Assembly (NCBI GenBank): GCA_964035545.1
Contig: OZ037770.1
Span: 558,001-622,000 of the forward strand
DNA from: Bugula neritina
Lineage: Eukaryota > Animalia > Bryozoa
Reading direction: 5' to 3'
Length of the DNA: 64,000 bases
Shown: positions 1-64,000 of the stretch, piece after piece
How the letters are laid out: every line of letters begins with the position of its first letter
How positions within the stretch are numbered: the first letter of the stretch is position 1
Made by a program: the position numbers and the translations under genes
The notes under the pieces: generated by a model
Told to the model about the DNA's origin: nothing
Database searches by the model: none
What the model saw: only the letters and a program-made list of their open reading frames with translations

Positions 1-2715
1 TTACCCCAGGTCTGTTTTCCAACTTTAGCTAACAACAAAAAAGTAACATTGGCCGTTGTAAAATCAGACGCTAAAACAGGCAGGACAAACGAGTGACTTT
101 GCATCAGTGTGACTTGTGAAAAGTTTAGTTGCATATATATAGTTCAATCTCTAAAACTGCTCTTGGCGTGTTTGAAACTACTTTTACAAAAAATGGATTA
201 GTTGATAGATTCTAACATTGTTTATAGTAAAGCAAAATCCAATTCAATTTCTGAAAGCTTACAAATGCAAAATATACAATACGTATCAACAACACAGTTA
301 TTGCGTTATAAAAATACCATTCAAGAGAAAATAGTACTGCCTTAATTATTTAATTAGAGTAGCTTAGGCCACTAAAGATTATTATGTGGAGAATTGTCTT
401 AAGTTTAGTTAAAGAAATGCAACATTTCATGCAAGGTTTCCCAAAGATGGGAATTTAGAACATACCCTACAAGAAAATGCTTATCTCAAAACTAAAAAAA
501 AATCAAGTTGACTCTGGTTTGCTGCTAAATAAAGTGAAACCAGCTAATGATTTCTTATAACCAACTTACTCTGCAAACGCGTCTAGCTTTTCAGTAGCGT
601 AAATAAAATTTGATATCATCTCATCAATTTGTAGCAAACTGGGAATTACTGAGACAAAAACGTTTGAAGTTTAGCGGGTTTCGTTATTGCAAGCATGATT
701 GTAGCTATAGTAAAGTTTCGCTCTAAGCATTATAACTGCAGAAGTGAGTTAATAATAATTACCTGTAACTCTTTGTTCTTGTTTACTCCCTACGACAGAA
801 TATTTAACTACTAGCCCATTATAGAAAGATTCCTTGCCTGAAGACTGTTTGGCTGGTGGTGGATTTATATAAACACGAAAACTCCCACTTTCGCCATTTG
901 AAACCAGAAACTTTTTAGCTCTCATTGGAGCTGAATTTAACAAACATAATATAATAATATTTAATATCTAATTCAAATTAATTGGAGGTATAAGTGTAAT
1001 GGTGTATTTTTTGTTATATAGCATGTCAGCTAAACCTGATCTAACTATATTATGTACGTGCGATTATTTTAAAATGATTGTTTGAAATTGAAGTCAAATA
1101 TTGCAGTTGGAAATTGCTTAACTTCAGAAAAAAGCACAATTGAAACTACACCTGGTTATATAAGCAAGTTTAAAGCAATTACCAATGTTTCTGAAAGCTG
1201 TTTCTTCTACCCGTATTTCTGTGCCTTTGTAATTATAAGCATAAAATGTCAACTGATACCTTGCTCCGGGTGCCAAGTCAGGGAACTCTGCCTTTACCAA
1301 GAATAACTCTATAGTTTATAGCATAACTGAAATAAGTTTTCTTTCTCTCTCTCTCTCTCTCTCTCTCTCTCTCTCTCTCTCTCTCTCTCTCTCTCTCTCT
1401 CTCTCTCTCTCTCTCTCTCTCTCTCTCTCTCTCTCTCTCTCTCTCTCTCTCTCTTTCTCTCTCTCTCTCTCTCTCTCTCTCTCTCTCTCTCTCTTGTTCT
1501 CTCTCTCTCTCTCTCTCTCTCTCTCTCTCTCTCTCTCTCTCTCTCTCTCTCTCTCTCTCTTTCTGATTTTTTCTTGTCCCAAGTCTTGCTAAGTTGTACT
1601 TACAGCAAATGTTCTTTTAGGTTTAAAAGCAGTCACTACAAAGTCGTGAGGATGTGTGTATAATTTGATGCGTTTTCCCTGAAGATAGAACTGACAGTAC
1701 ATATACAACAAGGCTCCGCGAGGAGTTACTCCAAGAGTTATATCTCCCTTCAGAGTAAATTTTTCTTCTTTCAACTGATAAAAATTCAAAGCTTCTTCAA
1801 TCACTCTACAGCAGAACAAATGTTCATATTATATAATTTATTTTTTCGAAAGTAGAAAATCTTGTAGTAGTTTTGCGCTATTAACTACTAATGGTGGATT
1901 ATGCATGAATGAGAGGCAAGAACATAACTCCTTGAACCTATTCAAGAGTAAGAACTGTAATTGATTTGCGTATGAAATTGTATGTTTAGAACTAACAAAT
2001 GAAAGAGAGGTTGAGATAAAATAATATAGCACAGAACTGCACATTCTACTCTATTTAAGTGTCACTGGGTGTACTGAATGTCCTGCTAACATAACGGACT
2101 TTCAGTCTCATTGGTCATGTGGGTTCCGGTCAAGTAGTCGCAATGAAGGCCGCCATGCAGCCATGTTGCATCCCAGACTGTTGCCAAGTGGCTAGTAGTG
2201 AATAAAACATTTAGAATATGAATGAATTTAGGCTAAGTTTCAAAGGCAGTGCAGGGTGGAGGGTAACAGAACAATTCCTATGCAGTCATCACAATATCTC
2301 CACAATTTTGTGCTATTTAAAAACTTACTATTGAAAGTTATTTAAAAGAGAAAAACACTCTTTTAGTTTGTATCTTTTTTCACAATTTAGGCTGTATGTT
2401 AGTCAAAACTGATTATTTCCTTATTTTTTGCCGCAAGTTTACTTTACGCTGGTTTGTCAAATTTATGAGTGTCACAAAATTTTACAGGTATAAGTCAAGT
2501 TGACACAAATTTGTCACACAGTCAATGTTTTATAGGTGTAAGTTGAATATATATTTTCATTGTGATATAATTTAATCATACAAAATTGATTTGTATGAAG
2601 TGCATTACAGCATGCAGACTTATTCTTATACTCACGGCCAGGACTCATATTCATAGTCATCCGAGAATGTTAGTTGATTCAACCACATAATAATGATAAA
2701 CCTTACAATAGTCAT
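1..2715 (-). CDS. G4: FN3-repeat type I membrane protein paralog, 5' part only (signal peptide, FN3-like domain 1, most of domain 2); continues beyond the left edge
   Basis: Hand-spliced GT-AG exons 2715-2636 (MTIVRFIIIMWLNQLTFSDDYEYESWP), 1805-1604, 1291-1183 (AEFPDLAPGARYQLTFYAYNYKG, FN3 E/F-strand motif), 930-763 and 28-<1. Phases are compatible and match G1-G3. Near-identical to the G3 5' region. Confidence 0.85.
1344..1560. repeat. (CT)n/(GA)n microsatellite, G4 intron 2
   Basis: Direct inspection. Confidence 0.98.
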
Positions 2716-3413
2716 TGTGATCAAGTTTTAGTTAAAACTGCTAGTACTGGTATATTTCAATTAATTAAACTTTCAATAAATTGATTAGTGAAGGTGTTTA
2801 TTTTGATTTTTTTTATTTTTTTCCATTGTTGATTTGCATGAAAATAGTTTAAATTGCTATAATTATGTCCTAATATATTATAAATTTCAACATTATTTCA
2901 TCTTATGCTTTAAAATATTATTATATTTTAATATGAACTTCATGATATAATTTTGAGGATTACAGAAAATCAATTAACCAAGGTTATAAAAACAGAAAAG
3001 TCACTAAACCAGAGAAAGATTCTCAAATTTAATTAGGTGCATTAAACTGTTGATAGGGTTAGGGTTCAAACTGGAACAAAACAGTCTTTTTAAGCGAACT
3101 CGTCTTTTGAGCATTTTGATGTTTGCAAAAAGTGTGCCTTGAGTTTGTTATCATATTAAATGACCATAATATATCAACTGATTCAATTTAGAAATAACAA
3201 AGAAGGTGAGAAAAAAAGATAGAAAGACATAAACGGAGATGAAATTAAAAAAAGCGAGAGAAATAAAAATACATATTATGTTAGAGTGTGTTGAATAACA
3301 TTTTATTTGAATTTTCAAAATCAGGAAATACATATTTTGGTGTATGAGTTTAACATAAGACTATAATCCACTGCTTTAAGATGATTTATGAGTTTGTCTC
3401 CTGACATTGTGAG

Positions 3414-61812: not shown

Positions 61813-62395
61813 GATTGACTGATCTAAAATAAATTCTAGTAACTAAATATTTTCAGTTCAACAATTACTAACGTAACTTTGTGATGAAGCCATACGTAAA
61901 AATATTTTTTAATATTTGTGTAATACTGACTTGAAGATATTGAAGCTATTTAAAGTACTACCATACCAGCAATAAATTTTATAGGTATATGTGCATATGA
62001 ATCGGTTTTAATACATGAGCTTTGTTTTATGATAATTCTTATTGCACTTTTGTTACTTTAGCTATATTCGAAATTTATATATATTTTACATTCCAATACT
62101 TTTTCATTATTTTGTACATCACCTTGACGAGTGGCCAAAGTCATGCTACGAAACAAATTTGTAGGTGATATATACTTGATATTAAAATAGAAGATTTTAG
62201 TCAATTGTACCTAACCTATATATGTATATATATTTTTTTTTTCAAATTTTTGGTAACAAACTAAACAATAAACCTGAAGCCATTTTGACAAAACTATTTT
62301 ATCTTAAAAAAACAAATATCATTGTTGATCGTGTAAAAATACCACAAGTTGAATTGATCAGGTATTGTTTGTACTTGAAGCTACATTTAGACATT
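61813..62395. promoter_or_regulatory. Putative shared (bidirectional) promoter/5'UTR region between G1 and G0
   Basis: Only 583 bp separate the divergent ATGs. Inferred from position; no specific motif is called. Confidence 0.5.
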
Positions 62396-64000
62396 ATGTT
62401 TATCAAAGTTGCAATATTACTTTGGGTGAATCAGTTGCTGTTTTGTCAAGGCGGAACGTTGTAAGTAGAATATAATATAAATTTAGGATATATTAATTTA
62501 TTTTTATTTGGCTTTTCTCTTGATCTTTCATCAGTTGTTTCAACATTTCTAGAAGATTCATACAAAAGGATGTATTAGATCTTCTACTGTAGCTTAAATA
62601 TGAGATACATAAATCATTTTTCATGCATGTGAACACATGTGAACACACACACACAATTAGCGCAAACATACACAGTCAAACATACACAGAGACAAACATA
62701 CACACAGACACACACAAACACATAGACACAAACAAATACATACAAACACACACAAACATACACAGATACACAGATTCAACAAATATTTCTTTCATTTTCA
62801 TATTTCTTACATTTTGCATATACATGTATTCTACACCTGCACGCATATTTATATACGTATACTCACATATTCTGCATATAGATACATTTACATAAAGTTC
62901 TGCTTATCTTTAACTTTGTTTGTTAAAAAATAATAAACAATCCAACATCAACTTTTTCCACAGATTTGATAAAGTGGCTCTGAATGTCTATAAGTTGCAT
63001 AGGGAGGCAGTAGTAGTGAGGGCGGAAATTAAAATTCAAGTTACTCTTGACCTTTTTGAAGTTTGGTACATGGCCTTTCAATTTTGTATGTCTGGTCATA
63101 ACTACCAAAGATGTAGTGAGTCATCGCGATCGGTTTTTAGCAGCTCACACATAAGAGAAACAGTTCAAGTGAGTGTGGTTTAATTTACTTGCTATATGTA
63201 CATTTAATGTCTCTTCTAAATCGCATGGGTTATAAAATCAAAAATAAATTGGTCGAGAAAAAGAGAGAGAGAGAAAGAGAGAGAGAGAGAGAGAGAGAGA
63301 GAGAGAGAGAGAGAGAGAGAGAGAGAGAGAGAGAGAGAGAGAGAGAGAGAGAGAGAAAGAGAGAGAGGGGGTAGAGAGAGAGAGAGAGAGAGAGAGAGAG
63401 AAAGAGAGAGGGTAGAGAGAGAGAGAGAGAGAGAGAAAGAGAGAGAGGGGGTAGAGAGAGAGAGAGAGAGAGAGAGAGAGAGAGAGAGAGAGAGGGAGAG
63501 AAGGTGGAGAGAGAGAGATAGGGAAGGTGGTTACTACTTTAACTTTTTACAAATTTGTTGTAGACAGAGTTCCGGTTCTTGTCAAACGGTGTGAGATACT
63601 TCATTCATTTTGTAGCTTTTCATGAATACGATAAGAAGATGGATCGAACAGCGTATATCAATATTCGTAAATTATCAATTTATATACAGCTGAATAAATG
63701 ATTTTTTTGTGATTTTAAAAGGATTTAAAGTGATTTATAAAATATACATGTAGGTTTTTAAAACACTCGTAAATTATTTGAGAGTTCATGTGCTCCTATA
63801 AATTGTAAGAAACTCCCCTATTTTTGAATTAGTATTTCAAATGTTTAAGAATCTTATCAAGTTGTCTAGTAGTTTATTTATACTTGTAAATAGATTTAGT
63901 CTGAACATTGCAGTAAATTACATCATTAGAGACATGCCTTTGTTGATACTTCTAGCTCCATTATCAGCTGAAAGATTTACTGTCAACAACGGAAATAATG
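62396..64000 (+). CDS. G0: divergently oriented paralog of the same FN3 membrane-protein family, 5' part only; continues beyond the right edge
   Basis: Exons 62396-62460 ([21 protein letters not shown], 65 nt and phase 2 like G1), 62964-63168 (ALNVYKL...YMAFQF, cf. ALNFYQL...YMYCQF in G4), 63564-63666 ([12 protein letters not shown]...TAYINI) and 63956->64000 ([14 protein letters not shown], cf. [14 protein letters not shown]). Same intron phases 2,0,1 and same (GA)n in intron 2. Confidence 0.82.
62643..62773. repeat. Degenerate (CA)n-rich repeat, G0 intron 1
   Basis: Direct inspection. Confidence 0.85.
63262..63518. repeat. (GA)n microsatellite, G0 intron 2
   Basis: Direct inspection. Confidence 0.98.

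Follow-up and report, generated by a model that had tools for sequence, protein, structure and literature searches.

The 64,000 nucleotides of Bugula neritina DNA analysed here (the window) are part of one cluster of 18 neighbouring genes (C6 495-701 kb, tzBugNeri2.1) for predicted surface proteins with six FN3-like domains, a family that is apparently undescribed. As an observation the receptor gene cluster was confirmed at the level of gene models, with exon-intron structures inferred from DNA alone. The window contains three complete 15-exon genes (682, 697 and 685 aa) and the 5' parts of two more, one of which (g11) lies on the strand opposite to the other receptor genes of the window. A first-pass annotation had proposed a tandem cluster of at least five genes reaching past both window edges; this was borne out, as the cluster comprises 18 genes and both partial genes continue complete and open beyond the edges (g07, here gene D, 708 aa, on the left; g11, 672 aa, on the right). 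The genome search for cluster size suggested there led, with six exon queries, to 18 copies at one locus and none elsewhere in the genome, and no exon profile picked up any relative beyond it at E < 0.3. Thirteen of the 18 genes are open and five carry an in-frame stop, in an assembly of QV 53.7. The cluster is flanked by sushi-repeat, ankyrin/kinase-like and NTase-TPR genes. The possibility that transcripts splice into the ankyrin/kinase gene downstream and share its sequence as a tail was considered and is unsupported: g01 has a stop and a polyA-like signal of its own, and the ankyrin frame likewise has its own ATG.

The genes annotated before as G1-G3, G0 and G4 could be rebuilt with GT-AG introns as predicted genes A, B and C, g11 (probably G0) and D. 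Gene A (G1; g10; 682 aa; minus strand, 53630..61812) consists of exons 1-8 (61812-61748, 60311-60098, 59893-59785, 59555-59388, 59121-58978, 58662-58523, 58355-58238, 58098-57944) and 9-15 (57217-57070, 56820-56647, 56147-55995, 55795-55713, 55512-55296, 54034-53959 (TM), 53714-53630 (tail)), and a B. neritina metagenome contig carries orthologous exons for exons 9-13 (84-88% aa). Gene B (G2; g09; 697 aa; minus strand, 42262..51503), the exon 13 of which folds as FN3, consists of exons 1-8 (51503-51436, 48702-48498, 48315-48207, 47934-47767, 47586-47443, 47270-47131, 46851-46734, 46453-46299) and 9-15 (45971-45824, 45258-45091, 44646-44494, 44089-44007, 43749-43533, 42711-42636 (TM), 42403-42262 (tail)). 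Gene C (G3; g08; 685 aa; minus strand, 3414..36729) has exons 1-9 at 36729-36656, 35824-35623, 35337-35229, 34978-34811, 34075-33932, 33833-33694, 33414-33297, 33205-33051 and 32740-32593, an intron 9 of 21.4 kb, and exons 10-15 at 11149-10982, 10663-10511, 9962-9880, 4780-4564, 3828-3753 (TM) and 3516-3414 (tail). The 5' part of gene D (G4; minus strand, 1..2715, ATG at 2715) covers exons 2715-2636, 1805-1604, 1291-1183, 930-763 and 28-1, and that of g11 (plus strand, 62396..64000, ATG at 62396) exons 62396-62460, 62964-63168, 63564-63666 and 63956 onward; g11 and gene A are arranged head-to-head with 583 bp between their ATGs. As annotated before, A, B and C each have their own signal-peptide-like exon, 76-nt TM exon and tail exon with stop.

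Several regularities argue for these models. Introns over the 18 genes were GT-AG in 249 of 250 cases and GC-AG in one, a count that holds partly by construction since the exon search required GT-AG-type sites. Exons 7, 9, 11, 12 and 14 have one length each across all 18 genes, all 47 length deviations (47/47) are multiples of 3, and the exons are retained in the orthologues of another assembly at a dN/dS well under 1. The two-exon modules noted before recur in every domain of all 18 genes. Of the phase-1 boundaries described in the first-pass annotation, those at the domain borders were found, whereas signal and tail introns are in phase 2 and mid-domain introns in phase 0 or 1.

Searches and folds used single exons, i.e. 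half domains, while spliced proteins served only for frame checks, alignments (A6 without g06 exon 3) and trees. Modelling of exon 13 from gene B (domain 6, 72 aa, half domain) gave a pLDDT of 80, and a structure search with this model led almost exclusively to FN3 domains among the top 50 (rmsd 2.2-3.9; sDscam FN3 tied for the top match) with Z-scores of 5.4-6.2, middling for what is only a half domain. The exon 3 profile matched fibronectin FN3 in the PDB (E 1.4e-4), which together with the exon 13 model supports the proposed FN3-like fold, and the exon 6 profile gave E 0.1-0.3. At the suggested Pfam check no single exon reached the fn3 cut-off (best E 0.042), domains 2, 4 and 5 are without tool support, and Fn3_Dep-1_4th matched faintly (E about 0.2). 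Exon 2, also a half domain, gave an uninformative model when folded alone; its gasdermin/pore matches were rejected as reflecting the open sheet of a half domain. Long bacterial matches, which are sums of weak beta-sandwich repeats, were rejected as homologues. Domain 1 closes with an FN3 E-F motif and has no conserved cysteine pair; the AxN part of the hallmark LxPGxxY...AxN is poorly kept. Overall, the FN3 assignment has support in domains 1 and 6, weak support in domain 3 and that of the motif only in domains 2, 4 and 5. The six domains represent no recent internal repeat, because domain-to-domain hhalign gave no significant match among them.

The type I topology proposed before is consistent with a hydrophobic exon 1 and a hydrophobic 24-codon exon 14 in 18/18 genes, the signal exons of C, D and g06 being only moderately hydrophobic. 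Between 5 and 11 N-glycosylation motifs were counted. The predicted cytoplasmic tails comprise 27-53 residues before the stop, with no ITAM in any of the 18, an ITIM-like match in one and no PDZ class I end. The lack of a catalytic domain is supported by the models, all of which stop after the short tail without a cytoplasmic PTP domain, and no PF00102 exon is listed for C6 495-701 kb among the best 150 candidates scored. WSxWS, the four conserved cysteines and Box1 are absent from domain consensus and tails. Basic residues in the TM exon occur only near its outer end and only in g02, g03 and g11-13, and ITIM members paired with charged-TM members of a common ectodomain are not evident among the 18 genes.

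Comparison of the gene models indicates that the cluster evolves through gene duplication and loss and through the exchange of exon blocks. In the chimeric gene C, exons 1-6 form a D-type 5' part that is joined to a B-type 3' part, and trees by exon block disagree with support of 100/99-100. Tracts 1..2943 and 34048-36937 are near-identical (95% over the whole length, introns 1-4 about 98.5%), which is best read as the 5' parts of C and D having been homogenised recently. A haplotig artefact is unlikely because only the 5' part is common, the 3' parts being 30-49% identical. Exon 2 differs between C and D at 11/202 nt (9 replacement, 2 silent) within a tract of 1.5% divergence; the excess reaches the silent sites too (2/43; N vs S p = 1.0), and this exon may be an older tract bypassed by conversion. 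A paralogue relic (minus strand, 52098..52583) retains a signal-peptide-like exon (52583-52522) and, 340 bp on, a tail-like exon (52182-52098) resembling the tail of A, with exons 2-14 missing; alternatively, these exons could supply B with another first exon or A with another last exon. The same signal and tail relic layout is found for g03 in the draft assembly, and one paralogue is present only in another B. neritina sample. Intron 12 of C harbours an LTR retrotransposon (minus strand, 5045..9874; 328-bp LTRs, 6 differing sites) with its pol split by a stop at 7174-7176; the intron donor survives because its GTAAG is exactly the 5 bp that were duplicated at the target site. Another LTR retrotransposon (minus strand, 37748..42100), with identical 198-bp LTRs and an open 1271-aa gag-pol frame, lies between B and C and is no part of the receptor genes.

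The paralogues are old (22-50% identical), and domain 1 is the most divergent (29% identity vs 41-49% for the other domains). For comparison with the UK assembly a B. neritina draft from Virginia genotyped as 'type S' (GCA_010799875.2) was used, in which the orthologues are stable, one-to-one and under purifying selection. Orthologous domains 1 are 75% identical with dN/dS 0.38, compared to 0.13-0.28 for the stalk; D1-2 and D3-6 differ accordingly (0.37 vs 0.20, p 0.013) at equal dS, and a dN/dS significantly > 1 was never seen. The distal-to-proximal gradient claimed before is thereby supported, and the 'hypervariable' distal domain is supported between paralogues only; between the two assemblies domain 1 is under purifying selection and changes modestly faster than the stalk; relaxed constraint on the distal domain would produce the same gradient. 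The locus diverges from the draft by ~20%, evenly across introns, spacers and genes, as would be expected of a cryptic species; B. neritina is a cryptic species complex (PMC11480708). Exon 2 of g01 shows one silent change between the draft and SRR40200xx contigs, samples that are probably non-independent.

No homologues were found outside B. neritina samples, in agreement with the earlier assignment to no known family; the closest entry in the databases, KAF6022523.1, is a hypothetical fragment of 90 aa, and metagenome scans, a long-frame homologue search, Rfam and Atlas (exon 2) gave no matches. R3 receptor tyrosine phosphatases (PTPRJ/DEP-1, PTPRB, PTP10D) share the FN3-only ectodomain and single TM helix but differ in having a PTP domain, in place of which there are here 27-53 aa and a stop, and no sequence match was significant. 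Tall class I cytokine receptors (gp130, Domeless, the short-tailed Latran/Eye transformer) likewise have six beta-sandwich domains before the TM and FN3 domains over two exons, whereas the Bugula genes lack WSxWS, the four-cysteine module and Box1, have other intron phases and are tandemly expanded. sDscam and clustered protocadherins resemble the cluster in grouped paralogues that vary distally and are conserved proximally, and possibly in an identity code, yet the Bugula proteins have no Ig or cadherin domains, and every Bugula gene is a complete unit that shares no constant exons with the others. KIR, LILR, SIRP and CD300 show the same birth-and-death evolution, chimeric genes, conversion and presence/absence variation, but are built from Ig rather than FN3 domains; as to the earlier analogy to vertebrate paired receptors, no activating/inhibitory pairs are evident in the 18 genes. 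Hydractinia Alr genes are also tandem, type I, single-pass and accompanied by pseudogenes in a colonial host, too divergent for standard profiles, with an FN3-like membrane-proximal and a variable distal domain (PMC9546547). Alr proteins, however, have V-set and other Ig domains, each encoded by a single exon, as well as tails with ITAM/ITIM motifs, and their allelic polymorphism is proven (PMC9546547), whereas the Bugula proteins have six two-exon FN3-like domains, no ITAM and no homology to Alr; domain 1 ends in the FN3 E-F motif and matches no Ig V-set. Given tails devoid of ITAMs and the reported lack of fusion between B. neritina colonies (PMC10078279), the proposed Alr analogy is weak.

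We tentatively favour, at somewhat below an even chance, a cluster specific to Bugula and shaped by birth and death, whose 18 genes would encode non-catalytic type I surface glycoproteins and serve as an innate recognition or adhesion repertoire that is set largely by the paralogues. Its anatomy, copy number, pseudogenes, chimerism and faster tip change have direct support in the predicted genes. The protein plan would comprise a signal peptide, six divergent FN3-like domains, one TM helix and a 27-53-residue tail; domains 3-6 would form a glycosylated stalk holding domains 1-2 roughly 20 nm off the membrane, with domain 1 as the putative paralogue-specific binding surface, and unequal crossing-over and conversion would move tips onto other stalks. 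Ligand tethering or signalling via a partner is the most likely mode because there is no enzyme domain and no ITAM, with partner contact possibly made by the conserved small-residue/Leu-Trp TM pattern and a Trp-containing juxtamembrane segment. The proteins probably bind outside partners, e.g. microbes or other cells, and the most likely ligands would be non-self surfaces (microbes, symbiont, biofilm, parasites). General recognition, as first suggested, remains plausible.

A doubtful but still sizeable alternative is a within-colony cell-identity or adhesion code, in which every paralogue would recognise either itself or a single partner on adjacent cells (neurons, zooid types, brood chamber, larval attachment), in the manner of clustered protocadherins or sDscam. 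FN3 stalks are frequent in adhesion molecules, the tails are short and without immune motifs, and the one-to-one orthologues are kept by purifying selection, but turnover is high (stops in 5/18, relics, chimeras), and a shared constant exon and PDZ class I end are missing. Stops, relics and the lack of dN/dS > 1 would also suit a largely redundant structural glycoprotein array expanded by drift under relaxed constraint at the tip, which is very unlikely given old paralogues that are each under purifying selection in both assemblies. The faster tip between the assemblies of a cryptic species complex could point to gamete or sperm-zooid recognition, yet dN/dS stays under 1 and 18 old paralogues exceed the need of such a role, making this the least credible explanation. 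Truncated derivatives of R3-type phosphatases or tall cytokine receptors, acting as decoys or co-receptors, are improbable: the FN3-only ectodomain, the faint Fn3_Dep-1_4th match and several expanded PTP arrays in the genome would fit, whereas the exon profiles stay within the cluster at E < 0.3, the FN3-PTP array at C6 8.0-8.4 Mb has mostly whole-domain exons instead of two-exon domains, and no WSxWS or Box1-like segment was detected.

Allorecognition is the weaker form of the recognition reading, and an Alr-like allorecognition or kin-recognition locus whose polymorphic domain 1 binds in an allele-specific way is quite unlikely. The colonial habit, clustered genes with pseudogenes and variable tip are in its favour, as is a report of larvae settling in a kin-biased manner in one population (Keough 1984, as cited in PMC10078279), though this was not found in another (PMC10078279). 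If the assembly and the draft were one species, their ~20% divergence at this locus would amount to extreme polymorphism. Against it stand the non-fusing colonies, the missing ITAM and V-set, the even divergence and, weakly, the nearly unchanged g01 exon 2. A related and equally improbable reading takes the two assemblies as ancient haplotypes of one hyperdivergent, balanced-polymorphic locus, with FN3 instead of Ig tips carrying self/kin or symbiont specificity; it is based on a dS of about 0.4, gene presence/absence and the chimeras.

Variable receptor arrays as a kind are well known already. In the literature searched no bryozoan recognition receptor was found. Besides its reported kin-biased settlement, B. 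neritina harbours a bacterial symbiont with a defensive role; if the haplotype reading were true, the locus would be the first molecular handle on self/kin or symbiont recognition in Bryozoa. A bounded family of 18 FN3-only genes, with natural tip/stalk chimeras and with orthologues in a second assembly, offers a compact test bed for the question whether a variable recognition repertoire can be built from FN3 tips.

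Self-comparison of the window revealed exon-sized repeat blocks on the minus strand, and setting exons at AG/GT sites led to three open frames, genes A (682 aa), B (697 aa) and C (685 aa), each with a hydrophobic exon 1, twelve exons that pair into six modules (85-108 residues each), a transmembrane (TM) exon of 76 nt and a tail exon. Gene D starts at 2715 and exits the window leftward, and a fifth gene, g11, lies on the plus strand (start 62396), head-to-head with A (minus strand, start 61812); three complete 15-exon genes and two partial ones, as in the first-pass annotation, were thus recovered, with splicing predicted from the DNA. 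The ATGs of A and g11 are 583 bp apart (61812-62396), where two strand blocks meet, and a shared promoter is possible. Intron 9 of C spans 21.4 kb, intron 8 of A contains a 570 bp hexamer/trimer repeat (57365-57933), and in most paralogues intron 2 holds long tracts of dinucleotides. The window occupies C6 558001-622000 of the Bugula neritina assembly tzBugNeri2.1 (GCA_964035545.1), which amounts to 216,009,554 bp from PacBio HiFi reads with QV 53.7 (PMC11480708). A search of its 321 pieces gave 18 significant places for each of six exon queries, all at C6 495-701 kb, confirming a tandem cluster that runs past both window edges and setting its size at 18 copies (g01-g18; A-D are g10-g07) at a single locus. 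Along the cluster ten minus-strand genes are followed by seven plus and one minus, and exon lengths and phases are conserved among the 18 models (672-708 aa). The cluster is real and apparently undescribed, as literature searches found no description of it.

Thirteen genes are open and five carry one in-frame stop each (g02 exon 8, g03 exon 6, g06 exon 4, g13 exon 2, g16 exon 6), which are unlikely to be sequencing errors given the assembly QV. Exon 8 of g16 is inverted (C6 675843-676459); the inverted repeats on either side of it, 140 bp long and 99% identical, take in the end of exon 7, and the protein of this exon 8 is 98% identical to that of exon 8 of gene B. Between A and B a relic (52098-52583) consists of a signal exon followed by a tail exon, and a second assembly (GCA_010799875.2, the draft) shows the same layout in its g03 relic (L031:651-1260), ahead of g02 and g01 in conserved order. 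The two relics are independent, with the tail exon within 0.5 kb of the signal exon in each, and since the flanking introns are both phase 2, in-frame splicing of signal to tail exon could yield a ~48-aa peptide. The draft g02 is intact in exon 8, where tzBugNeri2.1 has the stop, and has a frameshift in exon 4 (L031:4981-5141), either real or a long-read error.

Pfam, profile and structure tests for the FN3 fold were run on single exons, none of which reached the Pfam cut-off. A model of exon 13, which covers most of domain 6, reached pLDDT 80; FN3 domains made up nearly all of its best 50 structural matches, with tied Z-scores of 5.4-6.2, and an fn3-bearing cluster was among the entries listed for this exon by Atlas feature search. 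The profile of exon 3 (second half of domain 1) matched fibronectin FN3 (E 1.4e-4), that of exon 6 matched FN3 weakly, and exon 2 alone folded to an open sheet with no informative structural match. The previously claimed FN3 identity has support in domains 1 and 6 and weak support in domain 3, and motifs point to it in domains 2, 4 and 5.

On average, paralogues are 29% identical in domain 1 and 41-49% identical across domains 2-6, with the minimum in exon 2 (22%). Against draft orthologues dS was about 0.4 throughout, with dN/dS of 0.38 in domain 1, 0.34 in domain 2 and 0.13-0.28 in domains 3-6 (domains 1-2 vs 3-6, p = 0.013); close paralogue pairs gave 0.60 for exon 2 and 0.21-0.37 for exons 7-13. 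As dN/dS of domains 1-2 exceeds that of the stalk (domains 3-6) but stays below 1, the tip changes faster yet is constrained. The distal domain earlier called hypervariable is thus the most divergent among paralogues, but allelic hypervariability was not seen. Block trees conflict, with D joining C in domains 1-2 (100/100) and g06 in domains 3-4 (100/99), and C joining B, A and g16 from domain 3 on; gene C is a chimera of a D-type 5' and a B-type 3' part. This chimera and the order A, B, C, D are the outcome expected of unequal crossing-over between B and D, after which a 2.7-kb 5' tract was probably converted recently between C and D. Divergence within this tract is 1.5% for introns and 5.4% for exon 2 (nine replacement, two silent; p 0.0007), and since replacement and silent rates do not differ, selection and an older unconverted patch would explain exon 2 alike.

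An LTR retrotransposon (5045-9874) sits exactly at the donor of intron 12 of C, where its target duplication GTAAG and the first T of the LTR rebuild the full donor and the gene stays open. Another is very recent (37748-42100; identical 198-bp LTRs, open 1271-aa frame), with no target duplication apparent at the edges checked. Decayed fragments inside intron 9 of C (21927-24310, minus) gave no Pfam match; we take them to be non-LTR retrotransposon-like. Directly after g01 (C6 479-494.7 kb) come a gene of sushi repeats and one of ankyrin repeats, the latter with a kinase-like exon downstream, and two tandem NTase-TPR genes flank the cluster (C6 710367-715586 and 726729-731686), both long single frames whose N-terminal part resembles a nucleotidyltransferase (weak DUF294 match), with long TPR-like arrays.

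The tails of the 18 genes (27-53 residues) contain no ITAM and one ITIM-like match, often lack tyrosine and mostly begin with a Trp-containing segment; in the TM exon a pattern of small residues is conserved, every one of the 18 genes has Leu-Trp there, and cysteines usually occur towards the inner end. Judging from sequence, the receptors would be non-catalytic binding proteins held on a glycosylated stalk, acting via tethering or a partner protein. We tentatively propose non-self ligands, at slightly below even probability, on the grounds of turnover, chimerism, the fast-changing tip and the gene neighbourhood; the less favoured internal adhesion code seems rather unlikely. The earlier analogy to Alr and paired-receptor clusters holds in outline, but the cluster lacks the features that define either. 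An allorecognition locus is improbable, as the tails lack signalling motifs, colonies are reported not to fuse (PMC10078279) and allelic hypervariability left no sign, although domain 1 was compared within a lineage just once (one silent change, draft vs another sample), and this comparison is weak, since earlier Illumina data, perhaps including runs of that sample, went into polishing the draft. The genes are neither R3 phosphatases nor cytokine receptors; tandem PTP arrays lie elsewhere, at C6 8.02-8.43 Mb (about nine copies, many FN3 exons interleaved), C1 3.96-4.23 Mb, C3 7.6-8.1 Mb and C5 0.49-2.3 Mb. The cluster is an FN3-only form of a known locus type, its function putative.

The protein search proposed for named orthologs found only a B. 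neritina hypothetical protein, and a profile search of 1.84 billion representatives gave six exon fragments; bacterial repeats also matched, spuriously, and were rejected as relatives. As searched libraries may lack other bryozoan proteomes, this homologue range applies within Bugula. Homologous fragments on JGI and SRA contigs assigned to B. neritina, some 96-99% identical to the draft, match one-to-one to g01, g02/03, g06, g11, g12, g14, g15, g17, g18 and A, and a contig from another sample (L024) carries a paralogue without counterpart in tzBugNeri2.1. Genotyping placed the draft in type S (PMC7576161), which is common in the UK (PMC11480708), and at the cluster locus, the one place compared, its introns and spacers differ from those of tzBugNeri2.1 by 16-24%. 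Because this divergence is even and other samples are close to the draft, it suggests cryptic species. The two may instead be hyperdivergent haplotypes at this locus, which, if true, would be the basis for reading it as a hyperdivergent recognition locus.
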